64,000 bases of DNA from Glycera tridactyla (GCA_965644265.1 OZ286472.1:52514001-52578000), one strand, 5' to 3'. Shown: positions 8,640 through 34,090, counted from the stretch's first letter. Notes: generated by a model from the letters alone, not told the origin. Made by a program: numbers and translations.

Positions 8640-11600
8640 GAGGGCGCTGTGTGTAGGGCTATATAAAGGTCCCACAACCTTCACTCAGTCCACTCACGGT
8701 CGACTTTCTAAAGGTACGTGCGTATTGCACTTAGTTTTCAGAGTCATGGCGGGGTTCAAACCAAAGATGCCCTATATACCCATAGAGCAATGGCTTGAGC
8801 GCAAACCAATGGTTGTTGTATTGGGGCATTCTTTTATTAGACATCAAAAAGAGGCCATTTTGGAAGAAGTTTCAGCTGGTAAGGTACCACGTGGTGTCAT
8901 AATCGCTGGAATACTTCTGATATTGCGGACCAAATACTTGAGGCTCTAAAGCCCGACCTGTCGGTCTTGAATTTGGGTTCTAATGACCTGGTGAAGAAGG
9001 ACTGCCAGCCTGTACAGTTTGATCTATTGCAAATAGCATACAGGCTGATGGATGAAAACAAGGTTCGGACGGTAACGTTTATGTCTTGTGTGGACAGGCT
9101 GACAGCTCAGTCAGTTTTTAGGACTCGAGCCTGGAGTTCTCAATCAATGTTTAGAAACTGAATGTGAAGGGGCTTTGAGGATTGCTTGTTACAAGGTCCG
9201 GGTTTTGGATCATTATATCCTGGCCTGCCATCCATTGTCAGGATCTGGAGCTTAGATGACATCCACCCAGATAAACACTCAAAATACTTCAAAAGGTACA
9301 GGATGGAGATCAGGCAGGCTATCTTGTCCTCCTCCCGGCTTTGAGCAGGATTGTTTGTAGGTTTAACTGACCTCTGTAGTCGACCATAGGTGGTAACGAC
9401 TGATGGACATATTTAGGGATCGCTCATGAATTCGACATTGCTTTCAAAGGTGTGTCGCCCGCTTTCAGGGGCAGGAATTCAATTTCTGTTTCAGAACACC
9501 CTGTGGAACGTTGGAGCTCATTGAGAAGGGCCAGAAACTTGGTAGAATTGCTGGTCCATTCAAGAAGGCTCCATATGTTAACATTCAGGTTTTACCAGTG
9601 GCAGTGGGGCCAAAAAGAAAACCTGGCTCTTTCAGTCTCATCCATGATTTATCCGCACCATACAATTTTGTCGGTGAATGCTCACATACCTGATGTTGAA
9701 GCTACGGTACAGTACACTACCGTACGCTCTGGTATAGATTTTGTCATGGACACAGGTAAAAATGCATACATTTGCAAGAGCGATATCAAATCGGCGTTCT
9801 GCATTGTTCTGCTTCATTCCAGTTAATTTCATCTGATGAGGCTTTGGTTTCAGGATCTATTCCACATAGATAAATGTCTAGCAATGGGAGGACGGCCCTC
9901 ATGCTGCATATTTGAACGTTTCTCAACAGGGATACAGTGGATTGCCAATCACAAGTTAAGAATTCATAAAAAGGCACATATGATAGATGACTTCTGCATT
10001 GTAGCATCGGGATATGACGAATGTCTAAGGCAAATCCACGTTTTCAAAAAGTTTTGTCAAGATGTTGGCATTCCCCTTTGTCCTAACAAGACGGAACTTC
10101 CGTCCCAGTTTGTCTTTTTTGGGAGTGGAGATCAACATCCTCCAGGGCTTTGCAAAAAATTCCTCCAGACAAATTGCTCAAATATGGAACACAGATCAGT
10201 GAGATTTTGGAGGCAGGCACATGTACTTTTGGGGTGCTACTGTCACTCATAGGCAAGCTTTCGTGGTGCACGTTTCTGGAGCCACCGGGCAAGTCCTTTC
10301 TAAGAGAGCTTCTAGACGCCACCAGAAGTTATATTGCTTTCACTATTCTGTTCAGGGCCAATGTGATCAATGATTTGAAGATGTGGCATCAATTCCTAGC
10401 ACAATATAATGGTATTTCTTTTTGAGAGATTCAACACTAGATAAACAGGAACCTGAACACATGGCATCTGATGCTTGCAAAGATGGTGCAGGGGTGGTTT
10501 ATCGCAACCTTTGGTTTTTCATTCGATACTTAAGACAGGTGGGGGTGCCAGAACATAGCGTACTTGGAATTCTTCCCACTTTTGGCTGGGCTGATTACTT
10601 TCAGATGCTTGCTCAGACACAAGCAATCAATCTTTCATTCTGACAACATGACAGTGGTGGAGGTAGTGAACAGAAAGTCGGCTACAGACCCTAGCCTTAT
10701 GAGCACGATGAGACATTTAATGTCATTTTCATTGTGTGATGACATTGATTTCTTGCTGAGCATGTGCCCGGCATGGAAAATTGTATTCTGGATCGAATTT
10801 CACGATCTTGTTGTTCATAGGAGGATGTGAGATGAGCGGGCCTTGCTATTCATCCAGTGCTGGTGGACGAGACTGTCGACCCGTGTATTTGTGAACTGTG
10901 GTGACATTAGTGAATGGTTCTTTTGCGACTTCTACTGTGGTTGTGTATGAGCAAGTCTGTGAATAATCCAACAATTTTCTATTTGAGGTAGGCATGAGCA
11001 TTTCATATGATTCTGTGTGTCTGTACATGGCACATTTGTTTGATGAAAGGCTTAACACAGATAGAGCCAAAATGTCTGGCTTATCTCATTGTCTCAAACG
11101 TAACAATATGGAAGACTGGTGTAAACATTACGTTGTATCTCGCATGCTTAATGGTTTTGGTAAAGTGGCTAGGGGCAGTGACCTTCGCATGGCCGTCAAT
11201 AATCCTCGTTTGCAGACCATGGTTAAATGCTTATATTCTCTCTGTAACGATTTATATGAGATATACATGATTAAGTCTCTTTTCATTTGGCCCTATTACT
11301 TGTGTCTACGAGTCTCTGAGTATGCCAACACAGGGAATTCAGAGCATTTTTTGAGAATAAATGATCTGCAAGAGATTCAAGGCTCAGTTCGGAGGGGTTT
11401 AGGCTCAAAATCAGAACGTATAAGTTCTCTTCTGGTCCAAAAACTTTTCTTGTGCATCGCACAGGCGATGAGTTGTGCCCAGTTCAGTGTATGATTGACT
11501 ATTTGATCCTCAGGGGCAGAGCGCCTGCCCCATTTTTCTCTTACGAGGAAAACCTATTACAAGTCAATTTTTCAATATCTGGCTTGAAAAGATGAGGAAC

Positions 11601-11821: not shown

Positions 11822-12960
11822 TGTATTCATTCACATTTCGAAGCATTGCTTCTTTTGCATTGCTGTATTTATTCACATTTGATAAATTGGTTTATCGGGG
11901 CGCCCTCCAGGTGGCGAATTGGAATTCGAACTTTGAATATTTTTCACTAGAAAGATTTTCATTGTTTTTATTCATGAAAGTGCTATTATATTACAATATA
12001 TACGTTGTTCATTTTGCATCGCCTCCAAAAAAATATCTTGTTTTAGCATTGTCTGTTTACGATCCAAGTGCATATTCGCAAGGGTATATGATGGCGTGAA
12101 TTGTGGGGAGTCGACCCATTTTCAGCCTGAAGAGCAATGGTGATTTCTCTGTTAGCTAGCTAGTGTATGGTGGCAGGGCACACTCCAAACCAATGTGTCC
12201 TCATGTGCCGGTTGAACAGTGGCTGGGTAGGGAGCCGATGGCCTTAGTATTTGGGCATTCTTTAGCCCGTCACCTGGATGAGGAACTGGTGAATTTGTCA
12301 CACAGTGAGGAATACTGGCCAGAAATAGAGAGGGGCGTGCTCCGTTGGTAGACACCCAGATGGTTACGAGTATGCACAGGTTGATGGGTATTGCTGTAGC
12401 AAAGACCCTTTCTTGGATTTACTTGGCGCCAATGGCGCGATATCTGGCACACCCTCTCAGGTTGGTCAACCCATTGAGCTATCACGAATACCATGTGGAC
12501 AACCTAACCGTCTCCACAAGTTTCTGACAACCTATCAGCGAGTGGTGGTTCAATCTCTCAAGCTCCTAGTATGGGATTAATCACAACTTGCTACGTTTAA
12601 GAAGACATGCAGCTAATGCTTGCTTGTTCAAAATCGCCACATCATTTCAGGAATAGGTCATCCGGGTTCTAATACTTTTAGTCCTGCTTTCGGCTTACAA
12701 AATTCCAATAGTAACATTCATCTTAACGTTTCTCAGCCTACCGGTTCTCACAATCTGTTGCTAATAGCCAAAATGTTTCTGCTCTACAGCAGGAGTTCCA
12801 GGCCACCATGTCGTCAGCGTCTCAACAAATGGCGATTTTATCAAAAGTTGTGCAGGATATGCAATCCATGATCGACAACCTGGCTGATGGTTCCTCTCCT
12901 AGGACACCATATGGATCGCCACCAACCAACATACCTTCATCTCAAGGTAATTTATCTTTA
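11822..12960 (+). mobile_element. Ngaro copy N2 (5' fragment): SGNH N-terminus fused by deletion to gag N-terminus
   Basis: PVEQWLGREPMALVFGHSL; then gag motifs SKDPF, RRHAANA and SSQGN with donor CAAG|GTAAT at 12947. The left boundary after AAT 11819-11821 is tentative. Confidence 0.8.
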
Positions 12961-15469: not shown

Positions 15470-15821
15470 TCGTGTAGGGGATGCCCTCAGAGCCTATATA
15501 ACACGGTGCCTCGCTGATCTCGGCCTCACTTCCGTTTAGCTTCCAAGGTATGCAGACGTACCCTTTATCTCTACTCATCTTACACGGTGCCTTGCAGTTC
15601 TCGGCCTCACTTCCGTTTAGCCTCCAAGGTATGCAGACGTACCCTTTATCTCTATTTTATCTTACACTTGCTTGTCATGGCATGTCATCCCCATAGAGCA
15701 ATGGCTAGGCAGGCAGCCTACCGCCTGTATTTCAGGTCATTCATTTATCAAACACCATGAAGATGTGCTTTTGGAGAGAGTTATCAAAGCTGGTTTACAT
15801 GAGGAAACAGATAATGGTAAT
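15470..15821 (+). mobile_element. Host Ngaro H, part 1 (promoter, duplicated leader, SGNH N-terminus)
   Basis: TATATAA 15495; donor AAG|GTATGC 15548, duplicated at 15629 (81-bp unit); PIEQWLGRQPTACISGHSF...ETDNGN ending at AAT 15819-15821. Confidence 0.8.
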
Positions 15822-15931
15822 CTGATTTCTTTAGAAATCTATTTTTGAGAAAGGACATAAAGTAGTGGCTGTTAGTTTCAAACACGCTCACTAGGTGGTA
15901 GGATCTCTCCCTTAGGGGACTATTTTGTGTC
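15822..15931 (+). repeat. Split direct repeat A1 of N4 (110 bp)
   Basis: Identical base for base to 22237-22346. Confidence 0.9.
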
Positions 15932-16078
15932 TAGAACTTTGTCATAAGAATTTATTCCAAATGAACGGCAAGCTATAGATGTCTATAATTTTGTCTATTA
16001 TATATTGTCTACCTTTGTTACAAAAATCTTTCTTGTTTTAGGAATTTGGAAGATGTGACCAGTGGCGCCCTCACTGCA

Positions 16079-16137: not shown

Positions 16138-16174
16138 TGTTTATTCTTTCAACCTATCTTGTCCAATTTGGTTT

Positions 16175-16927: not shown

Positions 16928-17072
16928 AATGGGCTAGTTATGTGAGATTCTGTTGTTTTTCATTTGTTATACATTATTTTCACAAGTTATCTTTATTTAT
17001 TTTCGTTTCTTTATGAAACTGGTTATGTTAGTCATGCACAAATACCTGTGGGAATTTGTTTCGGTTTTTTAG

Positions 17073-18980
17073 ATGGCCAAACGTGGCCACTCCCTTGATA
17101 CGGATGAGCGTATCAAACGCAAACCTGAAGCAGTTGGTAGACATCCGGATTCTGTGGATTATGTGATCGTCGATGGACATTGCAGCAGCAAGGATCCTTT
17201 CCTAGATCTCTTAGGGGTTAAGGATACTCAAGCTAGCGCTCCTTCTCAGGTTGGTGATTCACAGTTATCGCAGATACCGTGTGCTCAACCCGTTAATAGT
17301 TCATCTGGAACTATCTTCACTCAATCTGCTGGGAGCCTTTCTTTTGAATCCCAACGCTTATCAATGGGTCAAAAATTGGATAGGCTTCAAAGACATGCTG
17401 CCAATGCGACATCAGTACAGAATAGGCATGTTATCAGCTCCGTGGGACAACCATTCGCCCAGCACACGCATACTGCCTCTGTTTTTAACCCTATCCTCAG
17501 CCAACCTCAGTGTATTCCTTCTAATGCTTTGAATGATAACAGTATGAACTTTTCTTTACACAGGCAATCTCTGCCGGACGAGCGAGCTGACCTTCGTTCA
17601 GCACTAGCATCTGCTGCAAACCAAATGGAGAATCTGTCCACCTTTATGACTGGCATTCAGGAACGTTTAGACGCTATAGACGATGGGCAACACACCAACC
17701 ATTTAAAGGGCAACAACATTCCGACATCTTGTCAAGGTAATTTCTCTTCAGCTAGTTCCTTACCCAGGGCGTCGGCTAAAGATTCAGACATGCGCTCAAA
17801 AATCGCTTCAAACAATTCATCTTCTCTCTTTCCCATGGGATTTGTGCATGACAGACTGACTCACGGACAAACGAACTTGCATACGTTAACGAATACGCAC
17901 TTATCTAACGACAAAGACGATCGCTTGAATTCATCTTCTCGCGGTTCAGGAATTTTTCCCTTTCCGCAGAATACAGGTTCTGGTAATCTTCCTTCTTATA
18001 ATACTGTTTCGATGCCAGGTTCGGGATACATGTCTGTTCCGAATGTTTCTGATTCGCACCACATGTCCATGTATCAATTACTAGAGAATCTAAGATCTGG
18101 AGTGAATAGTAATACTACTGCCTCCACTCGGGCTCTTACGGATGCAGAAAAACAAATGGGTTTCCGTTTACCAATTCAGGGTTCTGAGGGTGATTCTCCC
18201 TCTTCTCCATTTGGTGTTTTTCCCACAGCTAAACATGTAGGTATTCCAGCCATAGATAACCCGGAAGCTAGACCTATCATTACGGCAGGGCTACCCATTG
18301 GTTTTGCAGTGGATCTCCAAACCAGGATCGACATTTGGCAAGATAAGTTTATAGACCTTGCTGAATTGCTTCAACCTGCTCATTTTGGAAACCAACAATA
18401 TCGTGTTGACGGGAAAACAGGGCAGTTCGTAGCTGCTAAAAAACGGAAAGCCATTAGAACGATTCACGAATGGGACCAAGCTTTCTTGGTTTTTCAAGCT
18501 ATCTATAATCAGCACCCCTTTAAAAGCATGGAACAAAAAGCACGAGATGGGTGTGATTTGCTAACTCACGTAAACGAAGTACGTGATATAGCTGCTAAAG
18601 GTGGTAACTTTCTCTTTTATGATATTAACTTTCGTGCTTTGAGAGCCCAAATGGCTTCTCCTTTTCCCTGGTCCACTTTTCACGTATCTTTGCATCAGAA
18701 GTCTTGGAAGACGGATATAGTGGATGGTTCTTCTGTTAAATCGGAAGCCTCTTCTTCTTCTTCCCCTAAAATTCCAAAAGGGGTCTGTCAGCTATTTAAT
18801 GCTCAAGGCAAACGTTGCCTTTTCCCAAACTGCATTTTTAAACACATTTGTGCCACCTGTTCAGGTTCTCACACGGTTTATGCATGCAGGAATGTCGGAA
18901 GTCATGGATCACAGAGTTCGGGAGTTAAATGCAAGTTTGCTGGAGGTAACGACTCCAATAAACCCTCTACGTCTCAATAG
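17073..18980 (+). CDS. gag: Gag-like ORF1 with C-terminal CCCH and CxxC-H-C zinc fingers
   Basis: 635 aa; GLPIG...WQDKFIDLAELL...IHEWDQAF core; CQLFNAQGKRCLFPNCIFKHICATCSGSHTVYAC. Confidence 0.85.
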   Translation: MAKRGHSLDTDERIKRKPEAVGRHPDSVDYVIVDGHCSSKDPFLDLLGVKDTQASAPSQVGDSQLSQIPCAQPVNSSSGTIFTQSAGSLSFESQRLSMGQKLDRLQRHAANATSVQNRHVISSVGQPFAQHTHTASVFNPILSQPQCIPSNALNDNSMNFSLHRQSLPDERADLRSALASAANQMENLSTFMTGIQERLDAIDDGQHTNHLKGNNIPTSCQGNFSSASSLPRASAKDSDMRSKIASNNSSSLFPMGFVHDRLTHGQTNLHTLTNTHLSNDKDDRLNSSSRGSGIFPFPQNTGSGNLPSYNTVSMPGSGYMSVPNVSDSHHMSMYQLLENLRSGVNSNTTASTRALTDAEKQMGFRLPIQGSEGDSPSSPFGVFPTAKHVGIPAIDNPEARPIITAGLPIGFAVDLQTRIDIWQDKFIDLAELLQPAHFGNQQYRVDGKTGQFVAAKKRKAIRTIHEWDQAFLVFQAIYNQHPFKSMEQKARDGCDLLTHVNEVRDIAAKGGNFLFYDINFRALRAQMASPFPWSTFHVSLHQKSWKTDIVDGSSVKSEASSSSSPKIPKGVCQLFNAQGKRCLFPNCIFKHICATCSGSHTVYACRNVGSHGSQSSGVKCKFAGGNDSNKPSTSQ

Positions 18981-20535
18981 CTATTTAGAAGGGTTTCCTC
19001 CAGGTGAGAGGAATTATATTGTTGAAGGTTTTACTCGAGGCTTTGACATTGGGTTTACAGGTTTATCTCCTGCTTATAGGGGTCAAAATTCTCCTTCTAT
19101 TCAAGAGAATTGGGAGGTAGCTCATCGTCTAGTTTTAGACGAAGTTAATCTTGGCCGTATTGCGGGTCCATTTTCAGAGCCACCTTACTTAAATTTACAG
19201 GTCTCCCCTATATCGGTAGTACCGAAATGTGCTCCAGGGTCATTCAGACTTATTCATAATCTTTCAGCACCTTATAATGTACATTCAATTAATTTTCATA
19301 TACAAGACTCTGCAGCTTCTGTTCAATACATGACAACGCAAAAGGTTATTGATTACGTGATCGATATAGGCAAGTCAGCTTATATTTGCAAATCAGATAT
19401 TAAATCTGCCTTTCGTATTGTTCCGATAAAGCCAGACCAATTTCATCTTATGGGTCTACGCCTTGGTTCTGATTTCTACATCAATAAATGCTTAGCCATG
19501 GGAGCGAGATCCTCCTGCAAAATCTTCGAACGTTTTTCCTGTGCCATACAGTGGATTTGCAATCATAAGCTAGGCATCTCCTGTATGGCGCATATGATTG
19601 ACGACTTCTGTATCGTCGCTAATGGCTATGATGAGTGTTGTAGGCAGCTGGCCGTTTTTCAGTCTTTTTGCTCAGAGATAGGCATTCCTCTTTGCCCCAA
19701 AAAGACGGAATATCCTCGACAAGCAATGTCATTTTTAGGCATTGAGATTGACGTAGTTAGAGGCTTTGCTCGTATTCCTACAGATAAGCTATCCAAATAT
19801 GCTCAGGCTATTGAGCATATATTAAGCGCAGGTTGCTGCTCCTTTGGGGTAATGCGTTCACTAGTGGGCAAATTGAATTGGAGTGCATCGTTAATTCCTA
19901 CGGGCAAGTCCTTTTTGCATGGGTTGATTGACTCCACTAAAGGTTTATCCAACCCAGCACACATGATTGTCTTTTCAAATGCTGTAGTTAAGGACTTGTC
20001 CATGTGGCTTACATTTCTTTCATCTTATAACGGATACTCTTTCCTTAGAGATGTCACGATGAGACGCCATCATCCGGAACACATTTTCTCTGATGCCTGT
20101 AAATTTGGGGCTGGCGTTATTTACCGAAACCTATGGTTTAAACTTGATTTCATAGGCAAGTGGTGTGAACAAAATATCGCCTTTTTGGAATTTTTTCCTC
20201 TTCTAGTTGCTTTGGTAGTTTTCAGATTATCTTTGTGCCACAAAAAGGTCTATTTTCATAGTGATAATATGGCCGTAGTTGAGGTGGTCAATAGGAGATC
20301 AGCTAAAGATCCCTTATTATTGAGCATTATGAGACACATAATGCTCTTCGTTCTTTTGAACGATATAGACATCCATGCGATTCACATTCCTGGGGTAGAG
20401 AATGATTTACCTGATCGCATTTCCCGATCTAATTTTTCACAGGACGATCTTCTCAAAGCAGGCCTAGCTTTGCATCCGGTTCCTGTACCCCAAGACTACG
20501 ATCCAACACTTTGTACCCGCTGGTGTGTCGTTTAG
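18724..20535 (+). CDS. pol: Reverse transcriptase + RNase H (Ngaro type)
   Basis: VTTPINP, LGRIAGPF, FRLIHNLSAP, KSDIKSAFR, HMIDDF, FLGIEID; RH: FSDAC, NIAFLEF, FHSDN, NDLPDRISR. The true start is uncertain (ATG 18724 or 18880). Confidence 0.92.
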   Translation: MVLLLNRKPLLLLPLKFQKGSVSYLMLKANVAFSQTAFLNTFVPPVQVLTRFMHAGMSEVMDHRVRELNASLLEVTTPINPLRLNSYLEGFPPGERNYIVEGFTRGFDIGFTGLSPAYRGQNSPSIQENWEVAHRLVLDEVNLGRIAGPFSEPPYLNLQVSPISVVPKCAPGSFRLIHNLSAPYNVHSINFHIQDSAASVQYMTTQKVIDYVIDIGKSAYICKSDIKSAFRIVPIKPDQFHLMGLRLGSDFYINKCLAMGARSSCKIFERFSCAIQWICNHKLGISCMAHMIDDFCIVANGYDECCRQLAVFQSFCSEIGIPLCPKKTEYPRQAMSFLGIEIDVVRGFARIPTDKLSKYAQAIEHILSAGCCSFGVMRSLVGKLNWSASLIPTGKSFLHGLIDSTKGLSNPAHMIVFSNAVVKDLSMWLTFLSSYNGYSFLRDVTMRRHHPEHIFSDACKFGAGVIYRNLWFKLDFIGKWCEQNIAFLEFFPLLVALVVFRLSLCHKKVYFHSDNMAVVEVVNRRSAKDPLLLSIMRHIMLFVLLNDIDIHAIHIPGVENDLPDRISRSNFSQDDLLKAGLALHPVPVPQDYDPTLCTRWCVV

Positions 20536-21404
20536 TGGAAAGCTCTTTCGCACGTTCCACAGTAGTGAATTATAATAAGGTCTGGTCAGATTTTTGTACT
20601 TTTACTTATGAACATCAGCTTATTTGGTCTTACGAAGCCGTGGCTTTATATGTAGCTTTTCTCTACCAGCAGGGTTTGAAAGCAAATTCTATCAAATCTC
20701 GTTTATCGGCTATATCCCACGGTTTGAAACTATTTAACGAATCGGATTGGTGCAAACATTATTTGGTGGTACGTACAGTCATGGGCATTAGTAAGGAAGT
20801 TTCCGTGGCTGACCAACGTTGGCCTATTAACAAATCTTTACTCAATCTATTAGTAGAAGCTATTGTTTCTACTTTGGGCATTTCCTTTGATGCTTTGCTT
20901 TTGACAGCTATTTTTTCATGGGCATACACTGCTTGCCTTCGGGTATCCGAATATTCTAAGACTGGTTCGAGTAATCATGCTATTCAATTTCATGATATTG
21001 CTCCTATTGGCGAGCTTGGTAACTTGGTTGCTTTCGAGTTAGTTCTACGTTCGTATAAATTTTCATCTGGACAAAGAACCTTTATACTCAAGCAAGACCT
21101 TAATTCTGTATCCTGTCCTGTAGCCGCTATGCAACGCTATTTGAATGTAAGAGGTACATGTCCAGGCCAACTTTTCATACGCAGCGGTAAGCCAGTGCTT
21201 AGTTCTTTTGTCAACCATTGGCTTAAGGTTATTGGGAACTTAGTCTTGGGTTCTAGTCATGGTTTAACTAGTCACTCATTTAGGATAGGCAGATGCCTTG
21301 ACTGGGCAGCGGAAGGATGTTCGGACGAGCAAATCAGGATTCGAGGTAGATGGTCGTCGTCAGCATTTCGTTCGTATGTGAGACCCAATTCGGTTATTCT
21401 GTAG
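20511..21404 (+). CDS. Tyrosine recombinase; frame open from ~20433 with no N-terminal ATG
   Basis: Catalytic residues: ACLRVSEY (R), SYKFS (K), SHSFRIG (HxxR), RGRWSS (W), AFRSYV (Y). Confidence 0.92.
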   Translation: MYPLVCRLVESSFARSTVVNYNKVWSDFCTFTYEHQLIWSYEAVALYVAFLYQQGLKANSIKSRLSAISHGLKLFNESDWCKHYLVVRTVMGISKEVSVADQRWPINKSLLNLLVEAIVSTLGISFDALLLTAIFSWAYTACLRVSEYSKTGSSNHAIQFHDIAPIGELGNLVAFELVLRSYKFSSGQRTFILKQDLNSVSCPVAAMQRYLNVRGTCPGQLFIRSGKPVLSSFVNHWLKVIGNLVLGSSHGLTSHSFRIGRCLDWAAEGCSDEQIRIRGRWSSSAFRSYVRPNSVIL

Positions 21405-21634
21405 GGCCGCCTGTTTCTTTAGTTATTGTGGGGCAGGCGTCTATATTTTTCCTGGATTGCTTATGTTTCGACTACGTTTGACGTCATCGTATGTCTTATG
21501 ACGTCATCACGCATCTCCATTGTCTTGTGACGTCACGTGATCCACATTCATCTGGGATATACCATGCTGCTGAATCATTGTGTTTTTCCTCTTCGGAGGC
21601 CTGTAACATGGGGGGGGGGAGGCTTTACTTCTTG

Positions 21635-21660
21635 AATAAATATGTGTTTGTGTATGATTT
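21635..21660 (+). terminator. Polyadenylation signal AATAAA with GT-rich downstream element
   Basis: G-run, then AATAAA 21635-21640, then tatgtgtttgtgt. Same arrangement in N6 at 30542. Confidence 0.55.
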
Positions 21661-22221
21661 ATATCTTGAATTCAACACCTTTGTTTTCCTTGTATTCAAT
21701 TAAAGGAGTTTACAGGATCCAGGTATCCTTATTGCTAGGGAGGTTTTCCTCCTGTATTCGAGCTGTTTAATTTTGTTGATGCTCAGCATCTAGTTGAAAT
21801 TTCCAGGGGAAAAATTCCATTTTCGACTCTGAAGTCTGCAAAAGCTAGTTGCGGTTCAGACTTCAAAGTCTTGTTACCTGTGCCTCCTGGCACTTTTTGG
21901 ATTAATTTCAAAATTCCAGTCATTAGGACTTGTAGTGCCAGGAGGCATGGGTGTTGACAATTTGAGAACTATGAGCCAGACATAACACTAAATGTTATTT
22001 CTTTTGTACACTTCTCCCAGCAATCAGTGCTAATCAATATCACGTAAGTCTGCGGGCTTAGAATGAGTCACAACCTAAGTGGATGCTTAGGCGCTTAGGC
22101 TTATGATCATTGCAAGAATTACACTTATACTTGGCATACGCAGTAACACACAAAGACCATGATACGATTTGACTTCATTGATGGAATTCTGCATAATATT
22201 GGTGTCTTCTTACTATTATGG

Positions 22222-22363
22222 GAATTTTGCAAAAATCTGATTTCTTTAGAAATCTATTTTTGAGAAAGGACATAAAGTAGTGGCTGTTAGTTTCAAACAC
22301 GCTCACTAGGTGGTAGGATCTCTCCCTTAGGGGACTATTTTGTGTCCAGAATTTTGCAAAAAT
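22222..22363 (+). repeat. B1 (22222-22236), A2 (22237-22346), B2 (22349-22363) of N4
   Basis: B = gaattttgcaaaaat (15 bp) on both sides of a perfect copy of A1. Confidence 0.85.
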
Positions 22364-25119
22364 GTACCTCATGACCAAATTTACGCTAACCAACTTGATC
22401 TTGATACGTTCAGCGTCGTCAATTTCCGCCACTGCTTGTTTGTAAACAATTACGATTACGAGGATATAGCAGACGAGATCCTTCCACTTGCAGTCTTGAA
22501 ACTGGATCTCTTAGTTCTCAATCTTGGATCCAATTACCTTACACGTTGGGATATAGAACCACAATCATTGGCTAAAGATTATTTCGATCTTGCCGTCAGG
22601 ATCAGGAAGGCATGTAAGGTAAAGATGGTTGTGCTTATGTCTTGTGTGGATCGCTTGGTAGGTCATCCTAATTTCAGACAGCGTGCTGCTATCTTCAATA
22701 AGTTTACAGAACAAAACTGCGATGGTGTTCTAGGCGTGGATTTTTACCATGTCCGTGGTTTCGGTTCCTTCATGGAAGGCGTTCCTCCCACTGGGAAGAC
22801 ATGGAGCAGAGACTGGATTCATCCAGAAAAACATTCGCTCGGTACACAAAAGAGATGCGCCAGACGGCACTTACCAGTTTGCCTTCTTTAGGCTGGGTCG
22901 TCCGCAGCATTAACAGGAGCTATTAATGGAAGTGAGCAACCTTGACTGACAGACGACAAGGGAAGGGGGGTGGGGGAGAAGAGGGACGGATTTTACTTTC
23001 TGTTCGTTTGGTACAATGCCTGTCGTTTACCACCTTTTGATTTAGGGTTATTACATTGTTATTTTATATCATACTTATTTTTTCTCATGCTTATTTTCCG
23101 AAATTCTGTCTCGCCCTCAATATTTTCAGATGGCGAAGCGCATTTGTTCTGACGATTTTACCGGCCTCCACAAAAAAACGGCGACCATGGGCCATCCTCC
23201 TGATGCCAGTGTTTTCCATCCTGCAACTCAGGTAACTTACGACCCCTATACTGAACTATTATCGAATCATACGATGCCTGTCGTATCTGCTCATGACTTA
23301 TCTCCAAGTCTAATTCCTTGTGGCCAGACTGTAAATCCATCCCCGCCGAGGATTGCCTGTTCCTGATGCATCTTCAGGCTCTTTAGGTCCCAAGCTCAAT
23401 TATCTCAGATCTGCAGCTAGCAGGGCCTGCTCCATGCCGAATAGGCCATTGTTGAGTGGTATCAGAAGACCGGTATCTAATGCTTGTTATAGCACTTACA
23501 ATCATCCTGCATATGAACTCATTTGAAATTGCACTGTTACCAATGCAAATGTATCAGACACTGCACGATGTGCATCAGGAATTTAAGGTTACCATGGACT
23601 TTGCCATGCAATAAATGGCCACTATGAGTTCTGCAATGCAAAATATGCAGTCCAGGCTGGACAGATTATCTAACTGCCCTTCTCAAGGATCCGTTCAACG
23701 GTCGTCTGACTCGTTAACAGCACCACCAGGAGGTATGTTTGTTTGTTTGTTTGTTTAAGTTTAACGTCACTTAAACCCACTTGGGTTATATCGGACTGAA
23801 AAAACTGAAAATGCTGAAGAAAAGAGTCACTGCCTGCCGGGGGCCATCCCTACTCTGCGAAAGACAGCAGTGGATCTTTAACGTGCGTCAAGGAAAAGAC
23901 TCCTATCAGCACGGCCGGCCTTTGATATCCCAGTCGGCATGCACTGGGTTAGCATGCACACGATTCATATTTGTCTAAATATTCCCAATTCATGCAAATA
24001 ATCAAATATGTCTGTTGGATCGATTTTCATGAAAAGTTGCGTCATATTTTCAACATTGTGATACTTTACTCTAGTTTGCGATAGTTTTCTACAGTCGAGC
24101 AATAAATGTTTAACTGTGAGATGGCATCCGCATGCAAAGCAATTAGGATCGCCTTGTTTTTTCAGAAGGTGTGAATGGGTGAGATATGTATGTCCTATCC
24201 TCAGACGGGAAAGTACTATCTCCTCTCTTCTATTCATAGTTCTCACAGGAAATCTGTCCTCAAGTTTTGGTCTGATGTGATATAATTTATTTTGCTTTTT
24301 GGTTCCCTATTCATTCTGCCAGAGTTGGTCAATATAGAGCTTTATTCTTGGTTTGAAGTCAGAATAATGGATTTCCATCTCAGTGACTGGCAAACCTAGA
24401 GCCCTTTTGGCCGCTTTATCCGCTGCCTCATTTCCAGGAATTCCGATATGGCTCGGAATCCAGCAAAGTCTAACAGTCTTTTGATGATCTTTGATTTTTT
24501 TATACTCTTGCAAGATTTGCAAGAGTATACAGTTCCTGAGATTTCCCTGCAAGGCCTGCAGAGATGACAGGGAGTCTGTGAAAATTATGAATTTTTGTTT
24601 TTGTGACCTTGATAAGTATTTGAAAGCCATTAGTAAGGCCCTCAGTTCAGCTGAGAACACTGTTGACCAATCAGGTAATCTGCATGCATAGGAATTTTCT
24701 TCCTAATTCTACACATGCTGGTGTTCCCACACTTTTTTCCGAAGGATACTGATGAATGCTTATCTAATCGGCCTCCTAACTTGTGGAGACCTCACTTAAT
24801 TGGGAAGTCTCAATTGGGGGGAGGGAGACCTGACCTTACGCACAATATAACTGACGTTAACAGACAGACGGTCAACCCGACGCACACTCCTTTTGCTACG
24901 AGCTTACCTTCTATTTACCCTGACGTGCATTCTCATATGGACAACCCTTTGAACAACCATAACACAACGGTTGTTGATTATAGTAATGAAAATGTACCTT
25001 TGGAAAGAATGCGTCATGGTAGGTCTGCTCGTGAATCTAACGCGTCTTTGTCGTTGCATTCAGCAGCTAACGATGCGGGTTTCCGTGACTCGAGTGTTAC
25101 AGGCCCTTCTGCACATAAT
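22364..25119 (+). mobile_element. Host Ngaro H, part 2 (SGNH C-terminal two thirds, gag N-half)
   Basis: VPHDQIYANQLDLDTF...NLGSN...DWIHP; acceptor ttttcag|ATG at 23130 (MAKR...); interrupted by Nimb at 23736-24690; ends at AAT 25117-25119. Confidence 0.8.
23736..24690 (-). mobile_element. 5'-truncated I/Nimb-clade LINE (RNase H, C-terminal zinc knuckle, 3' UTR, (AAAC)n tail)
   Basis: FSAELRAL, IFTDSLS, WIPSHIGIPGNEAADKAAK; RLRIGHTYLTH...CFACGCHLTVKHLLLDC. Confidence 0.9.
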
Positions 25120-28100
25120 TTTATTTCTCGGAAATATCTTTTTGAAGAACGGAAGAAGTTGTGTGCTGCTGTTTTCCTTTTGGTAACGATAGGTGGAGCT
25201 TTAAATATTATGGGAAACGTATGTAACGCAATTTTGAACTATAGTATCAACGGGAAAATGTTCTAGAATTTATTCGACTTGTTTTTGAATATGTATAAAG
25301 TGTTACTTTGTTTACATTAAAAAAATATCTTGTTTCAGGTAGAATTGTTATGTGATCATCTGTGCATGCGCGAACCTATATATACGGGAGACTCGAGAGG
25401 GCTCGGCCATTTTCGGCCAGATCTGCAAGGTGACGATTCTTTCTTAGCTCTTAGCTCTTAGCATGAAGTACTTTAAACCCAAGTACCCATTTGTTCCAAT
25501 TGAACACTGGCTTGGGAGGCAATCTAAAGCGTTGGCTTTGGGACATTTGTTCGTGGCTCACCAAGACCAGGCCCTCTTGGAATTGGCAACTGAAGAGGGT
25601 TATTTGCCCGACATTGAAAGTGGGGTTTTGAGCCGTGGAGCAGTGAATGCCAGGTTGCTGAACCTAAATGAAACGTATTCTGTTGTCAATTTTCGGACAT
25701 GTCCATTCTTTAAAGTATATCCTAACGATGATGCAATCAATGACGAGCTGTTGGCGCTCAACGCTCTGGAACCAGACGTGGTTTTGTCCAATTTTGGGTC
25801 CAACGACCTGGTTCATTCTACAGACAATGCAAATGCATTGGCCGACGCGTTGTTTGACATTGGTGTCGATATCATTGACAGAGGGAAAGCTAAAGTGATC
25901 AATTTTATGGCATGTTTGGATAGGACAGCTGCGCCTAAAGGGTTTAGAGCCGGAGCGCTTGAAACAGCTTGAAGCATCTTGCATCAGTACGTTTGGTTTA
26001 CGTTTCCACAATACAAGTGGTTTTGGACGTCTTGAGGCTTTTACTCCCCGGTCAGTGCATATTTGGAGCCCAGATGGGATACGCCCTAGGAAGAACACGA
26101 AGTACTTTAGAAGGTACACAAATGAGAATGGCTCAACTCACATGTTACCTGAGCTGGGCAGAGTGGTCCGGGGCATTCGCACCAGGCTGGGTCTGGTCTA
26201 AAATGGGATTACCAGTTGTTATTGTTGTTGTTCGGATTGATTTGTTGTTTGTTGTTATGACTTTTTGCTGTGACACGCTTGCTCGGAAAATTTTGACTTT
26301 TAGGTGTCGAAGAGGAAGCTTACGGAGGACGTGGATGATCGTATAAAACGCATGCCAGCTGCTTTGGGAAAAATACCAAGAGGATATACTCCCGTTGATG
26401 GTCATGCAGCTAGCAAGGATCCTTTTCTTGAACTTTTGGGAGGTGCGAGTGCGACACCTATCGCACAGTCACAGGTGAGTGATGACATGTCTCAAATCTC
26501 TTGTGGACAGCGCAGTTCAGACTCATCTGGAGCTGACATATCTGTATCGGGGGGGGGGGGGGGGGGGTCTCAATCTCTGAACCTCATATCGGCTTGGGAA
26601 ACAACATGGACAGATTGAGACGTCATGCCGCCAATGCATGTCCTGTGAACAATAGACATATCTTCACCGGTATAGGGAGACCTGTCCCTAGTGTTGGCAA
26701 CTTTACTTCAGGGTTCGGCAATTTTCCTGGGCAGACTCAAACGCAAACTTTTTCCAATTCTGGTCAGATAGTCAACAATGCTCCTTTTACTTTGCATAGG
26801 CCTTACGCTGATAGTCTACGGGAGAATTTGAAAGCCTCGTTGGTTTCTGCAACGCAGCAGATGGACAACTTGTCAAAGATTATGTCGGACATCCAGACCA
26901 GAATCGACCATCTGGAAAGTTCACCAGCAGGTCCTGCAAGTGCTAGTGGGTTCGCTCCTACGAATCTGCCTTCATCTCAAGGTAATCATATTTCACATCC
27001 TCATAATGTTGGCGTTCAGACAAGCAGTTTGTCTGACCAGGATGAACGTCGGGGCACAGGGAGTGTATGTGCTTCACAGCGAGGGTTTCTGAGCAATGTG
27101 GGTGTCACAGCGACTTCAGACGGACAGACGGACAAAAATTTTCAAAATAATTTAGCTAATCATTTCAGAATGGATTTAGATGACCGCATACGGACAAACA
27201 GATTTCAACCAAATAGTGGTCTTCAGTTTTGAACCCTGGACTCGGTTTCAGATGATCAATATGCCATTGCTAATGGGTCTCAATTGCCTAGCGCTAGAGC
27301 AGCGAATAATGTGTCTACTTTTCACTTGCTTGAGAACATGAGGCGTGGTATGGCAGATAGAGGCGACGCTCGTCTGCTGCCTTTATGCGTGCAGCTGAAC
27401 AAGCTGGTATACGCAATCTGTTGCAGGATGAAATTCCGTCTGCTCAGCAGACAGGGGTGGCTTTGTTTGATGTTTCTGAGTCAAGGAAAGTAATCACGGC
27501 GGGGCTCCCCATAGGGTTTTGTGTAGATCTCCAAACGTAGGATCGACGTGTGGCAAGATAGGTGCGTCGATCTTGCAGAATTGCTACAACCAGCTAAAAT
27601 CTCAAATCCTGAATACAAAGTTGATGGGAGAACTGGTCATTTTGTTTTGGCGAAACGAAGAAAGGCTATTGAAAATATTCATGATTGGGACCAGGCATTT
27701 TTGGTATATCAGGCTATCTATTCACAGCACCCTTTCAAGAGTTTACAGCGGAAGGCTAAGGAAGGCTTAGATATGCTTACTCATATCAATGAGGTGAGGG
27801 ATATCACGTCTAAAGGAGGGAATTTTCTCTTTCACGACGAGAATTTTAGAGCTTTATGTGCGCAGATGGCGGACCCATTTCTGTGGTCCACCTTTCATGT
27901 AGACTTGCACCAGAAATGCTGGAAGGCGGATGTGGTTCAGAGTAACAATGTTCAATCAGATGACAGTGGAGGCGGTACCAAAGTACCCAAAGGTGTGTGC
28001 CAGTTGTACAATGCTCAGGGGAAGAGACGTCTCTTCCCCAACTGTATATTTAAGCACATTTGCGCATCTTGTACAGGCATTATCCTGCTTATGCATGCAG

Positions 28101-31100
28101 GACTCCTTCCAATGGCACAGGATATCAGGGTGGTCAGAAGCAAAGACCTACATCAGGTGGTGACGCCAGTAAACCCACGCAAGCTTGATTCTTACTTTGA
28201 GGGATTTAACTTAGGTGAGAGACATTATTTAGTACATGGTTTTACTTTCGGGTTCAAGATCGGTTTTGTTGGAATCTCTCCAGCTTATTGAGGCAGGAAT
28301 GCTCTGTCTATTCATCAAAACGTAATTGAAATTGGCAATGTAAACAGGCTCACATTTGTAAGTCCGATATAAAGTCAGCGTTTTGTGTTGTTCCGGTGTC
28401 GCCAGAAGATTTTCACTCAATGGGGCTTAGACTGGGTTCTGATTATTATATCAACAGATGTTTGGCGATGGGGGCTAGATCTTCTTGCAGGATTTTTGAA
28501 CGTTTTTCTTGTGGGATTCAGTGGATATGTAATAGCAAGTCAGGAATATCGAGAATGTCCCATATGATAGATGATTTTTGTATAGTTGCGGAAGGTGAAC
28601 AAGAGTGTAAGCATCAGCTTTCAGTTTTTCAAGATTTTTGTAAAGAAGTAGGCATCCCCTTATGTCCAAAGAAAACGGAACTTCCAAACAGAACGATGTC
28701 ATTTTTAGGCGTAGAAATTGATGTGAAGAGGGGATATGCGCACATTCCCCAGGATATGCGCACATTCCCCAGGATAAATTATCCAAGTACGCTTCCATTA
28801 TAGATGAAATTCTTTCATCTCATGTTTGTACCTTTGGAACCATTCGTTCACTTGTGGGGAAGCTGAACTGGAGCACATCCCTTGTACCAGTGGGGAAATC
28901 TTTGACGCTATTGACGGATGATTGACGCTACTAAGGGTTTTTACAACCCGGCACATCTTATTCCTTTTACGGAGGAATTACGTCAGGATTTGACCATGTG
29001 GAAATCGTTTTTAGATTAATACAAAGGGTATTCATTCTTGAGAAATGTGACTCTCAGACGACATGAACCGGAGCATTTATTTGCAGATGCTTCCAAGTTG
29101 GGAGCAGGGGTGGTATTCCGGAATTCATGGTTCTATTTAGAATTTCCGCCATCTTGGCAACTGTTGAACATAGCAGTGCCAGAATTCTATCTAATTCTGG
29201 CTGCTTTAGTTATCTTCAGATTATCCTTGAGACATAAACGTATTATTATGCATAGCGATAACATGGCGTGTTGGAGGTGTTGAATCATCATTCGGCTAAA
29301 GATAAAAGACTTATGAACTTCATTAGACGCATAATGTTATTTACATTATTAATTGATATTGACTTTCAAGCAGTTCACGTACCGGGGATTGAGAATTGCA
29401 TACCTGACAGGATCTTCCGATCAAATGTTTCTCAGGACGAACTCAGGGAGGCAGTGCTGGCAGTGCATCCAGTACCGGTACCGATGGAATACAATCCGAT
29501 GTTTTGCGCACCACTGTAGATCGTTTGGTTGACGATTCATTTGCGAAAGGAACTCTTGTCATCTATAACAATGTCTGGCTTGAATTTTGTAATTTTGTTC
29601 GGGATTCTCATTTTCCTTGGGATTATGAAGTGATTACATTGTATGTAGCATGGTTGCACCACAAAGGGTTGAAATCTACATCTCACGGCTTGAAGTCGGC
29701 TAACAAGCCTCATTGGTGCAAACATTACCTTGTGAGTCGGATGTTGTTTGCTTTGGGAAAAGCTGATAAATCTTCGGATAAAAGAGTGGGAGTAGATTTA
29801 TCGCTTTTGGAGAAACTGATCGGAGCGGTTTTTGAGCTGCTTGATAATTCTTTCGATGCATGGCTCATAAGCGTTATGTTTGCTTGGGCTTATGAGGCGT
29901 GTGAGTACGCTGAGATAGTGTCCAGTGATCACGTTTTGAATTTAGGAGATATCGAGAAGGCTTATGAACGAGGAGTTACAGGGCTTCAAAATAACTTTTC
30001 GTTCATATAAGTTTTCTTCTGGAGAAAAGAGGTTTGTCATTAACCGGGAAAACAATCGGGAGGTTTTGCCCTGTTGATTTAATGGTGTCATACCTTTCTA
30101 TCAGGGGGGACCAGGATGGACCACTTTTTCTCAGAAACGGCAGGGTAGTATCCAGTCAATTTGTAAACAAATGGCTGAAGACAGTGGGTGATTTAGTGCT
30201 GGGTGAAGGACACACATTAGCGACACATTCTTTTCGGATTGGTCGTTGCTTGGATTGGGCAGCCGAAGGCTGTTCAGACGAGAAAATTCGCATCATGGGG
30301 CGATGGTCGTCGTCTGCGTTTAGGTCATATGTACATCCTAAAATAGTTAGCTTGTGGGGGCCGCCTGTTATGTATTAGTGTTGTGGGGCAGGCGTCCTTG
30401 CTTTGATAGTCGGTAGTGTTAATTTCCTATCCGGATACTGCTGACTTAAGATTCGACAAATGTCCTGAAACTTAACATGTGTTTACGCTATCATCCATTT
30501 CCTCTGTGAAAAGCTTGTATAATGGGGGGAGGGTTTTTGAAAATAAAATTGTTATTTTGTGTCTCTGATGTTCTGTTCTACACATGTGTCTCAATTACAA
30601 CATTCATTCACATTTATTGAGCTCTGGTTCATCCTAGGATCTGGTCTTAGGATTGGTTGACATCCTAAGCAGACTTATGGCTTAGGATCTATTGGCATCC
30701 TAAGTGTTTGCTTAGGATTGGTTTCTGTCTTAAGTTGTCTTAAGAAGGTTTACATGACATGCTTTGGTGTTTCACACCTTTGTCGAGCTGATTAATTTTC
30801 GATGCAATTCTTGCATCTTGGTGTGGGCAACATTCTTGCCCTGGTATCGACTATAAGTCTGGTACATTGTGCCTCAAGGCACTGCTTTGGATTAAGGTCA
30901 AAATTACAGCCATTATGGCTTTGTAGTGCCTTGAGGCATATGTGTAAACAAGATATGAGCCAAACATGTTTGTTACATCAGTGTTCTTTTGTCCTTGAAA
31001 TACTGGCCATCGAGATAGATAATACTTGGCAATCGCAAACTTATGTTGAAGTATGAAAGTGGCTGAATGAAAGTTGGAGCAAATGACAAGGGAGTAATCA

Positions 31101-31127: not shown

Positions 31128-34090
31128 GTGGTTTCACGGATCAAGAGATTTGCCTTAGTCTAGATCCCAACTCTCGCAACATTGCTACTGGTGGCTTGCC
31201 CATTGGTTTCTCTGTTGAATTGGATGTCAGAATTAACATCTGGCAAGACAGTATATAGACCCCACCGAGCTTCTGGAAACTGAAAAAATTTCCCACCAAC
31301 ATTACGTTGTTGATGTCTAAAAAGAGGAAAATTATCAGGAATATTCACGATTAGGATGAGGCCTTAATTTTTCAACACATTTATCATCAACACCCCCTTA
31401 AGTCACAAGAACAGAAGGCTAATGAGGGTATTCAGCTTTTGGCCTATGTTTCTGAGATTTGGGAAATATTCTGTACTATGATGAAAACTTTCGTACTTTA
31501 GGAGCCCAGGTGCGTGTTCCATTCCCATGGGATACATTCCACGTCGTTCTCCGCCAGAAAGCCATGAAGTCATCATCCCCACCTGAATAACTCGGGAAAA
31601 CAAATTTCTGGTAAAATCGGAAAACCAAAATTACAGAAGGGTTTCTATCAGTGCTATCATGCACAGGACAAGGAGTGCATGTTCTCCAAATGCACATAGG
31701 CATTTTTGCCCTGTTTGTGATGGCAAGCACCCTGTTTATCTGTGCCGGACTGACAGCTCTGGAAACTCAGAAAAATCAGATTTCACAAGGAAAAATCAGC
31801 TCCTAACAGTGACGCCAATCAACCATCGACGCCTGAATGAATTTTTACATGGTTTTTCTCAAGGTGAGGTAGTTTATCTCATTAACGGTTTCAAATTCGG
31901 ATTCGATATTGGATTTGTTGGCTCATCTCCTGCATATCGAACAAAAAATCCTACCTCTTTAGAAAATCTCTATCAAGAGGTTTGTTTGTTTATTTGTTTG
32001 TTTGTTTAAGTTTAACGTCACTCAAACCCACTTGGGTTATATCGGACTGAAAAAACTGAAAATGCTGAAGAAAAGAGTCACTGCCTGCCGGGGGCCATCC
32101 CTACTCTTTGCAAAAGACAGCAGTGGATCTTTAACGTGCGTCAAGGAAAAGACTCCTATCAGCACGGCCGGCCTTTGATATCCCAGTTGGCATGCACTGG
32201 GTTAGCATGCACACGATTCATATTTGTCTAAATATTCCCAATTCATGCAAATAATCAAATGTGTCTGTTGGATCGATTTTCATGGAAAGTTGCATCATAT
32301 TTTCAATATTGTAATACTTAACTCTAGTTTGCGATAGTTTTCTACAGTCGAGCAATAAATGTTTAACTGTGAGATGGCATCCGCATGCAAAGCAATTAGG
32401 ATTGCCTTGTTTTTTCAGAAGGTGTGAATGGGTGAGATATGTATGTCCTATCCTCAGACGGGAAAGTACTATCTCCTCTCTTCTATTCATAGTTCTCACA
32501 GGGAATCTGTCCTCAAGTTTTGGTCTGATGCGATATAATTTATTTCGCTTTTTGGTTCCCCATTCATTCTGCCAGAGTTGGTCAATATAGAGCTTTATTC
32601 TTGGTTTGAAGTCAGAATAATGGATTGCTCATGATCTCATCATGAAGGACGTTTGCTTTGGGCCGCATCGCAGGGCCATTTTCGGACCCTCCTTTTCCCA
32701 ACATACAAATATCACCTATATCATTTGTTCCGAAAAAGGTTCCAGGCACTTCCCATCTTATACACAACTTATCTGCGCCCTACAATCATCTTTCTGTGAA
32801 TTTCCACATTCCAGATAGTGAGGCCTCTGTGCAATACACTACTGTTTTTTCTGTTATTAAATTCATTATTGCTTCAGGAAAATCTGCTTTCATATGCGAA
32901 ACACATATCAAATCTGTCTTTAGAATAATTCCTATTCACCACAGCCAATTTCGTCTCATAGGTATTAGGTAACGTATACTTTATTAATAAATGCCTCGCT
33001 ATGGGTGGCAGGTCTTTCTGTCGTATCTTTGAAAGGCTATCCTCCGCCATTCAATGGATTTGTCAACATCAGTTGAACATTCCTCACGTTTCTCATATGA
33101 TTGACGACTTCTGCTTTGTTGGCAATGGTTATGATGAATGTTCGAACCATCTACATGCTTTTCAACACTATTGTTCTTATGTCGGCATTCCGCTCTGTCC
33201 CAATTGAATGTGCGTGAGGGTTTCGCTAAGATACCCCATGATAATCTTCGAAAATATGCTGGGGAAATCGATGACATTTTGTCAGCAAAGCAGGTCTCTT
33301 TGGAGTACTCAGATCACTCATTGGAAAACTCAATCGGGCTACCTCTCTCATTAAACCTGGAAAATCCTTTTTTTACGAGGCCTCATTAATTCATCACGTG
33401 GTTTTCGTAACCCTGCCTGTTTGGTTCCTTTCACCGAGGAGCAATATTATGATTTGGAAATGTGGAAGGAATTTCTGGAAAACTAGAATGGTTTCTCTTT
33501 CTTGAGAGAGATCACCCGGAGCAATCAAGAAGTGGAGCAAATTTCATCAGACGCTTGCAAGCGAGGGGCTGGAGTAGTTTACCATAACCTTAGGCTTTGC
33601 ATGGAATTTTCCGGTGTTTGGTCTGAGCAGAACATTGCTTACCTTGAGTTCTATCCACTATTGGTCGCTCTCATGTCTTTTTGCTTGTCTTTGACACATA
33701 AACAAGTTATCTTTCATTGTGATAACATTGAGGTGGTCGATGTCGTTAACAAAAAATCCGCCAAAAACCATGATCTCATGCACATCATGCGTCATATCAC
33801 CCTTTTTGCCTTGCATAATGATATTGATTTCTCTGCTGTACATATTGCTGGTGTTGAAAATGTGATACCTGGCCTAATTTCACGTAACAAATGTTTGCAG
33901 GAAAAGCTGAGAGAAGCGGGACTGGCCATACATCCCATCAAGATCGCCGATCACCTCAACCCCACAAACTGTGGCCTATGGTAGACAACCTCGTATATAG
34001 TTCACTTGGGCTGAGTTTCGCGCTTTTGTTTCGGAGGTAGGCATCTCTATTTCTCAAGACGCAGTGGCTCTTTATATCGCGTCTTTACAT
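31128..34090 (+). mobile_element. Host Ngaro H, part 3 (gag C-half, RT/RH, YR N-terminus)
   Basis: TGGLPIG, WQD, HFCPVCDGKH, VTPINHRRL, HMIDDF, SSDACK, FHCDN; YR start MVDNLVYSS at ~33978. Confidence 0.8.
31983..32626 (-). mobile_element. Second 5'-truncated I/Nimb LINE copy inserted in the RT of H
   Basis: Highly similar to 23736-24370. Removing it rejoins ...YQEV|AHDLIMKD..., matching N4 ...WEVAHRLV... Confidence 0.9.

Follow-up and report, generated by a model that had tools for sequence, protein, structure and literature searches.

How does a retrotransposon of the DIRS order translate a tyrosine recombinase (YR) reading frame that overlaps its neighbor and often has no ATG? In the literature covered here this step is unexplained, and the same question is raised by N4, an element on the + strand (15819–22366) of a 64,000-nt stretch of the Glycera tridactyla genome (GCA_965644265.1 OZ286472.1:52514001-52578000; "the window" refers to this whole stretch). 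A preliminary description of this DNA had proposed that the N4 recombinase is made by splicing out most of gag and pol. The proposal is supported by annotated introns in related elements, by an intron-less copy in Branchiostoma belcheri (locus L005), and by codon choice at the acceptor. Judged from sequence, N4-type elements are most likely spliced as proposed, with the donor after 17736 and the acceptor before 20443.

N4 is an intact Ngaro-type element whose recombinase frame has no nearby start codon

N4 is an intact Ngaro-type (DIRS-order) tyrosine-recombinase retrotransposon. Its ends are delimited by a 123-nt direct repeat (A1 and A2 in Table 1) whose copies are 98% identical, and a 15-nt repeat, gaattttgcaaaaat, lies on either side of A2 (~22222–22236 and ~22349–22363) as the only candidate found for B1/B2. 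The pol protein, which comprises reverse transcriptase (RT) together with RNase H, is 35–38% identical to the pol proteins of annotated Ngaro-like relatives and carries the RNase H end motif.D.ISR. A Pfam scan of N4 pol returned RVT_1 only, with no methyltransferase domain, the feature that separates Ngaro from DIRS1-like and PAT-like elements. The YR frame contains the invariant residues R144, H255, R258, and Y289 (the R, H-x-x-R, and Y columns of alignment A1), a full HMMER search with YR gave 1422 matches at E <= 1e-10, and no DDE integrase is present. As summarized in later papers, published Ngaro elements comprise gag, RT/RNase H, and YR, optionally with an SGNH hydrolase; they have direct repeats at their termini and open reading frames (ORFs) that overlap (Goodwin and Poulter 2004, via PMC7192593, PMC9210276, PMC6681497). 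N4 resembles them in its gene set, direct terminal repeats, and overlapping ORFs, but its hydrolase ORF comes first, whereas that of the described elements comes last. The window holds further copies (N1, N2, N6, H, and fragments), all of them decayed, whose DNA is only 65–70% identical to that of N4 where alignable.

The YR frame of N4 opens only three codons 5′ of the proposed acceptor, and its first in-frame ATG (20781) lies 113 codons past that site, which bears out the earlier remark that the frame has no ATG for roughly its first 90 codons. A weak Phage_int_SAM_1 match covers residues 33–91 of the translation begun at the acceptor, upstream of ATG 20781. Because the first ATG lies behind this SAM-like domain, a start farther upstream is really needed. 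When the excision of 17737–20442 (2706 nt, a multiple of 3) was recomputed, it yielded a 1626-nt ORF of 541 aa without an internal stop, the Gag-N/YR protein that had been described. The sites, their phases, and the open frame exist in N4. Residues 1–221 of Gag, which would form the N-terminal part of this protein, are predicted to be largely disordered apart from a single helix modeled with confidence at residues 170–206 (single-sequence AlphaFold2), and helix-like motifs occur at the same place in N2, in H, and in relatives.

Proposed donor and acceptor sites are shared among copies in the window

Equivalent donors had been reported at 17737 (N4), 26982 (N6), 12947 (N2), and 23733 (H), in phase 1 of gag for N4, N6, and H. 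All four GTs are present, and the frames agree: in N4, 17736 is the first base of gag codon 222, which places the donor in phase 1, the phase is the same in N6 and H, and the N2 donor is in phase 1 as well. AGGTA at the donor is the sole invariant run of at least five bases in the aligned variable gag stretch of these four copies. Scored with an approximate donor matrix, GT 17737 ranks second among the 163 GTs from the gag ATG to the acceptor and first of the 32 phase-1 GTs in the gag-only part. It departs from consensus at +5, with T instead of G.

The YAG/G acceptors (slash, splice junction) previously located at AG 20441-2, 29434-5, 33899-900, 10819-20, and 51027-8 are likewise all present and pyrimidine-rich. 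In N4 the tract is 76% pyrimidine over −20 to −4, with no AG from −30 to −3. A YR-frame codon begins with the G of the acceptor AG, and in N4, N6, and H it lies exactly 23 codons 5′ of the conserved start of YR; this spacing had also been claimed for N1, where it does not hold, the distance being one codon shorter and an in-frame stop being present, as in a decayed copy. The agreement in phase arises because the Gln codon is conserved in pol and the −1 offset between YR and pol is conserved too. It follows automatically and is not independent evidence for a splice, a caveat on the earlier argument. In N1 the acceptor triplet (10818–10820) is TAG, a stop in the pol frame, yet still usable as a YAG acceptor.

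The Gln codon at the acceptor is CAG in 12 of 12 elements and CAA in none. These comprise four window copies (N4, N6, H, and the fragment at 51028) and eight related loci (L001, L002, L003, L006, L007, L008, L009, and L010, with L007 and L009 representing one Branchiostoma floridae family). Elsewhere in seven of these pol ORFs, Gln is encoded by 56 CAG versus 65 CAA, so the expectation that the codon before the acceptor is CAG rather than CAA is borne out. For the Arg of the neighboring SR motif, the 11 readable copies all use CGN, compared with 98 CGN and 64 AGR as background in the seven pol ORFs, and this choice places no AG near the acceptor.

Related elements carry annotated introns between a gag exon and YR

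With the N4 translation from acceptor to stop as the query, a full HMMER search across 1.84 billion cluster representatives returned mostly YR-only proteins of ~300 aa. It also found proteins of 437–521 aa in which a basic N-terminus (MPPKRK-like) and a low-complexity stretch precede the YR. These longer gagN-YR proteins are NCBI models from Nematostella vectensis, B. floridae, Argopecten irradians, Mercenaria mercenaria, Saccostrea echinata, and Littorina saxatilis, named "uncharacterized protein ... isoform X", while those of B. belcheri are submitter models. Junctions were derived for Nematostella XP_048584136, B. floridae XP_035692092/3 and XP_035680556, Argopecten XP_069129436/7, and Saccostrea XP_061187279/81 (Table 1). 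These loci lie on OW051989.1 (Nematostella), CM022896.1 and CM022891.1 (B. floridae), CM084270.1 (Argopecten), and JAVQLB010000029.1 (Saccostrea). Exact look-ups gave no record for isoforms P0073 and P0096, and sister isoforms took their place. All annotated donors (L002, L006, L007, L009, and L010) are in phase 1, and in every case the intron holds the conserved core/C-terminal part of gag together with RT/RNase H. Every annotated acceptor is a CAG Gln codon right after the RNase H motif AD.LSR, followed by a pol tail of ~30 codons. The N4 acceptor lies at the equivalent place, three codons farther from the SR motif (ISRSNFSQ/DDL). Ngaro elements from three other animal phyla are thus annotated with a splice that joins a gag exon to YR, and the models of four species have phase-1 donors and the homologous CAG acceptor.

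Paired alternative phase-1 donors occur 12 nt apart in Saccostrea (L010 3439–3452) and 18 nt apart in B. floridae (L007 ~3511–3530), where a donor of the L009 type lies 18 nt 5′ of the L007 donor. They are annotated as separate isoforms, between which the Gag-N-YR protein varies by 4 or 6 residues. Isoform X2 of L007 (protein P0073) is shorter by six residues, precisely at the paired-donor site. Alternative isoforms in NCBI models would imply transcript support.

Many database YRs are stand-alone ORFs of ~300 aa that begin a few residues before the conserved YR start, as would be expected if YR were translated alone, without Gag, from a non-AUG codon, from the internal ATG 20781, or by reinitiation after the pol stop. 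A candidate of the first kind is TTG 20511, which opens a mechanically called ORF in N4. In addition, L001 and L003, metagenome contigs of eukaryotic origin that keep CAG at the acceptor, have a YR-frame ATG near this site. From these ATGs and the YR-only ORFs, some families may not need the fusion. In N4, however, a start at ATG 20781 would drop the SAM-like domain, and on unspliced RNA position 20511 sits >3.4 kb and many ATGs past the gag start. In the Argopecten family, the Logan ORFs are truncated and begin at internal ATGs, so that family is also without a YR start of its own. Since translation of YR alone further leaves both the conservation of the donor and the processed copy described below unexplained, we consider it improbable.

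An intron-less copy in B. belcheri matches the predicted splice

The B. belcheri gagN-YR protein P0022 (437 aa) is encoded without an intron at L005, where the fused ORF is intact. L008 is a full-length B. belcheri copy of the same family, and the two loci are 96.7% identical up to L008 position 4334 and 98.3% identical from L008 position 6553 on. L005 is without 2223 bp of L008, which can be placed as CCTAG/GTACGG ... TCTGCAG/GTAGAC; this absent segment is of the GT-AG type, with a phase-1 donor and an acceptor at pol TLSRLQ/VDRF. Homology between the copies stops at the 3′ side of the element, and they lie on different scaffolds. Because L005 loses exactly the GT...AG segment, it looks like a retro-copied spliced RNA, and on the simplest reading it would be a spliced RNA that was reverse-transcribed and integrated.

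Two gagN-like-YR ORFs without an intron, nearly identical to each other (447 of 453 residues), are present on different chromosomes of Littorina. One of them, at L004 (3001–4362), encodes 453 aa that comprise a basic N-terminus, a helix, and the YR, and a remnant of a hydrolase-like ORF lies upstream (1557–1883). L004 may be a mobile processed copy or belong to an RT-less family; its designation as a proven processed copy was dropped, there being no full-length parent for comparison.

The pol/YR overlap of N4 has no canonical slippery heptamer

In all elements examined, the YR frame is offset by −1 from that of pol, and the two overlap by 100–232 nt. This arrangement would suit a Pol-YR fusion made by programmed −1 frameshifting in the ~100-nt overlap, which would render the GT and AG sites irrelevant and which the preliminary description had named as a refuting alternative. 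The N4 overlap contains no canonical slippery heptamer (X XXY YYZ), and frameshifting was rejected for this element on that ground. The overlaps of N6, L002, L006, L007, L008, and L003 also have none, and L001 alone has one. Frameshifting would moreover leave unexplained the conserved donor in variable gag, the exclusive use of CAG, the annotated isoforms, and the intron-less L005, and we regard it as very improbable.

Where the pol tail and the YR leader are read from the same bases, the pol-frame tail is the better conserved (AGLA.HP.P.P), and the YR-frame reading is a variable Ser/Gly linker. The tail retains AGLA(L/I/V)HP.P in N4, N6, H, and N1 despite the overlap (20443–20535, 29436–29519, and 33901–33984).

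Evidence weighing against splicing

Several observations speak against splicing of N4, among them the YR-only ORFs and the L001 and L003 ATGs described above. No N4-family fusion protein was found in protein databases by word-indexed search or HMMER; the word-indexed search with the N4 YR frame gave four distant matches, none of the N4 family. The N4 junction ...TGTCAAG/GACGATCTTC... has no match in JGI metagenome contigs, and a junction search allowing up to 2 mismatches revealed no processed N4 copy in the window. Logan members of the relatives' clusters are all ORFs truncated at an internal ATG on genomic contigs, with no cDNA contig among them. We infer splicing of N4 in vivo by homology, and the NCBI intron models are taken as annotated. 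The acceptor ranks only sixth of 160 AGs with a crude matrix. In the window family the acceptor lies five codons past the SR motif, compared to two codons in the relatives. The codon counts treat kin elements as independent, which makes the odds rough, yet these elements are deeply divergent (27–38% protein identity). Finally, the placement of the L005 deletion is ambiguous over 5 bp (AGGTA), and a microhomology deletion at the DNA level is formally possible.

Some of these points would fit a locus with no functional splice, in which CAG is kept for the Gln of pol, AGGTA arose by chance, the NCBI models borrowed a start codon, and L005 is a product of microhomology deletion; the automatic phase of the acceptor and the 5 bp of microhomology at the L005 junction are in keeping with this. 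A need for Gln, however, predicts neither 12 CAG versus 0 CAA nor the avoidance of AGR codons for Arg. The models of four species choose the same homologous acceptor and phase-1 donors only, and for the donor pairs spaced 12 and 18 nt apart they list distinct isoforms. The L005 deletion, for its part, matches the predicted sites to the base. We accordingly attach only a small probability to the absence of a functional splice.

Proposed expression mechanism and comparison with known systems

Under the splicing mechanism, full-length N4 RNA would serve as replication template and gag/pol message, as in a retrovirus. Part of it would be spliced from the moderately strong phase-1 donor in gag to the CAG Gln codon just past RNase H. 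Translation of the spliced mRNA would start at the gag ATG and give a 541-aa protein composed of Gag 1–221 (a basic disordered N-terminus and a single long helix), then a linker of 23 residues whose codons overlap the pol tail in a different frame, and finally the whole recombinase. Splicing would be partial, so that full-length RNA stays available for gag/pol translation and replication; the imperfect N4 donor would fit this, and the intron-containing copies are those that propagate. The shared Gag-N module might tether the recombinase to the complex of Gag and cDNA or carry it into the nucleus, and splicing would in this way do what Gag-Pol fusions made by frameshifting do in retroviruses.

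We lean slightly toward a broader, joint proposal for metazoan Ngaro elements. According to it, splicing of a Gag-N exon onto YR would be the ancestral and general mode of expression from cnidarians to chordates, with the acceptor built into the codon after RNase H and an N-terminal module (basic tail plus helix) that brings the recombinase to the nucleus or to the complex of Gag and cDNA. On this view, spliced RNAs copied back into DNA, such as L005 and perhaps both Littorina copies, would make up an unrecognized class of gagN-YR elements without RT, or of recombinase genes that are potentially domesticated.

Partial splicing with a donor inside gag produces the env mRNA of avian sarcoma/leukosis virus, in which the gag AUG serves as start codon and the envelope protein carries about six fused gag codons. 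The proposed Ngaro splice is alike in its gag-internal donor, its start at the gag AUG, and the in-frame fusion of gag codons to the downstream product. It differs in that 110–221 Gag residues, including the helix, are fused to an integration enzyme, in an element that is of the DIRS order and not of the long terminal repeat (LTR) type. N4 has the layout of this env-type arrangement: the candidate donor is in gag, the candidate acceptor lies shortly before the downstream gene, and the predicted product is in frame. The annotated loci of four species have the same structure. Foamy virus Pol is translated from its own spliced mRNA and contains no Gag part; here, too, a replication enzyme comes from a spliced subgenomic RNA and not from a Gag-Pol frameshift, but the Ngaro enzyme is a tyrosine recombinase and keeps the Gag N-terminus.

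The logic is likely the same as that of Gag-Pol in retroviruses and LTR retrotransposons, in which an enzyme is tied to a Gag module at a ratio set by an inefficient event at the RNA level. In Ngaro, by contrast, that event would be splicing and not recoding, only the N-terminal third of Gag would be shared, and RT/RNase H would be left out. Splicing in the plant Ogre elements joins gag-pro to RT and integrase, and in Drosophila copia it produces a gag-only message. Both are retrotransposons with a functional intron that switches which ORFs are translated, as is proposed for Ngaro, but neither Ogre nor copia is known to skip RT to express the integration enzyme. The proposed Ngaro mechanism would be subgenomic splicing of the retroviral style, with Gag-N fused to a tyrosine recombinase in a DIRS-order element.

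The Ngaro papers covered describe the ORFs merely as overlapping or frameshifted (PMC7192593, PMC9210276, PMC6681497), without splicing, whereas N4 is proposed to splice gag onto YR. No splicing for YR expression was found in the covered literature on DIRS, Ngaro, VIPER, and Crypton elements; Goodwin and Poulter 2004 and the Poulter 2005/2015 reviews were outside this coverage, and a prior mention is possible. A Gag-N/YR splice in Ngaro has apparently never been described before. If it is real, it would provide a concrete and testable mechanism of YR expression, and Ngaro elements would run a retrovirus-like splicing program. It would also explain the truncated recombinases that result from ORF-based annotation, predict a class of RT-less processed copies, and affect both the annotation of Ngaro elements and the counts of autonomous copies.

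Table 1 Features of N4 and related copies in the window, and annotated introns of relatives (a slash marks the splice junction).
Feature	Position or locus	Strand	Details
5′ terminal direct repeat of N4 (A1)	15819..15941	+	123 nt, 98% identity to 22234-22356
SGNH/GDSL hydrolase ORF, 250 aa	16175..16927	+	inside N4, 5′ of gag
gag ORF	17073-18980	+	frame 0
Proposed exon	17073..17736	+	gag codons 1-221 and first base of codon 222; gag ORF
Splice donor GT of N4, CAAG/GTAATT	17737..17738	+	same CAAG/GTAAT in N6 and N2
Proposed intron, 2706 nt	17737..20442	+	remaining gag and nearly all RT/RNase H; removal leaves 541-aa frame
pol ORF, RT/RNase H, 603 aa	18724..20535	+	+1 frame relative to gag and YR; Pfam RVT_1 E 3.1e-10
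Acceptor of N4, pyrimidine-rich tract and CAG	20420..20442	+	AG 20441-2; CAG is Gln codon, pol ...ISRSNFSQ/DDL
YR frame, stop-free	20433 to 21404	+	frame 0; stop codon 21402-21404
Proposed exon	20443..21404	+	23-codon Ser/Gly-rich leader and tyrosine recombinase; ends at stop 21402-21404
Dual-coding stretch	20443..20535	+	30-codon pol tail over YR leader; two reading frames
3′ direct repeat of N4 (A2)	22234..22356	+	15-nt repeat on either side, may be B1/B2
Equivalent acceptor AG in decayed copy N1, TAG	10819..10820	+	AG retained
Equivalent donor GT in fragment N2, CAAG/GTAAT	12947..12948	+	phase 1 in local frame carrying conserved helix motif
Equivalent donor GT in host element H, GGAG/GTATGT	23733..23734	+	phase 1 in local frame
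Equivalent donor GT in N6, CAAG/GTAAT	26982	+	phase 1 of local gag frame
Equivalent intron in decayed copy N6, 2454 nt	26982..29435	+	in frame; phase-1 donor, CAG acceptor
Equivalent acceptor AG in N6, CAG	29434-5	+	pol ...FRSNVSQ/DEL
Equivalent acceptor AG in H, CAG	33899..33900	+	pol ...ISRNKCLQ/EKL
Equivalent acceptor AG in decayed fragment, CAG	51027..51028	+	pol-frame ...ALS*FSVPQ/EQL
Annotated intron, Nematostella, 2178 nt	L002		donor CTCAG/GTGAGA; acceptor TCTCGTCTCCAG/C; pol SLSRLQ/LQVF
Annotated intron, B. floridae, 2196 nt	L007		donor TGCAG/GTAACA; acceptor TTTTCAG/A; pol CLSRFQ/IDTF
Annotated intron, B. floridae, 2215 nt	L009		donor TACAG/GTATCA; acceptor same motif as L007; pol CLSRFQ/IDTF
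Annotated intron, Argopecten, 2268 nt	L006		donor CATAG/GTGTGT; acceptor TTTACAG/G; pol ALSRLQ/VDKF
Annotated introns, Saccostrea, 2184 and 2172 nt	L010		donors CAGG/GTAATG and GAAA/GTACGT, 12 nt apart; acceptor ATTACAG/G; pol SLSRLQ/VQEF

Hydrolase ORF and candidate leader intron upstream of gag

The hydrolase ORF of N4 matches Pfam Lipase_GDSL_2 with an E value of 3.2e-7 and 31.5 bits, just under the gathering cut-off of 32.9. In B. belcheri L008 (1023–2826 and 8460–8833), one copy of a ~370-nt family repeat separates the hydrolase gene from gag and another follows YR, a placement relative to the hydrolase different from that in N4, where the hydrolase sits inside the A1...A2 interval.

In the window, a TATATAAA box (16079–16086) is followed by a candidate leader donor, GAAG/GTGACG (GT 16132–3), and a strong acceptor, ttttttag/ATG (AG 17071–2), abuts the N4 gag start. 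If this donor and acceptor were joined, the hydrolase ORF would sit in a first intron. Splicing of the leader donor straight to the YR acceptor was also considered and rejected: the N4 leader is without an ATG, and the Argopecten leader ATG is in phase 0, unfit for the acceptor. In N6 the same cttttag/ lies directly 5′ of a mutated GTG gag start (26304).

Argopecten L006 (3001–4481) has a leader intron with the geometry of the predicted N4 first intron: RefSeq isoform X1 joins a 24-nt leader exon (ATG 3001, GT 3025) to cttcttaag/, which abuts the gag ATG at 4481. A tblastn search of this leader intron found no hydrolase. YAG is located 2–6 nt upstream of the gag ATG in each of L002, L004, L007, and L008. 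The sequences upstream of gag suggest that a leader-to-gag splice, too, is widespread among relatives.

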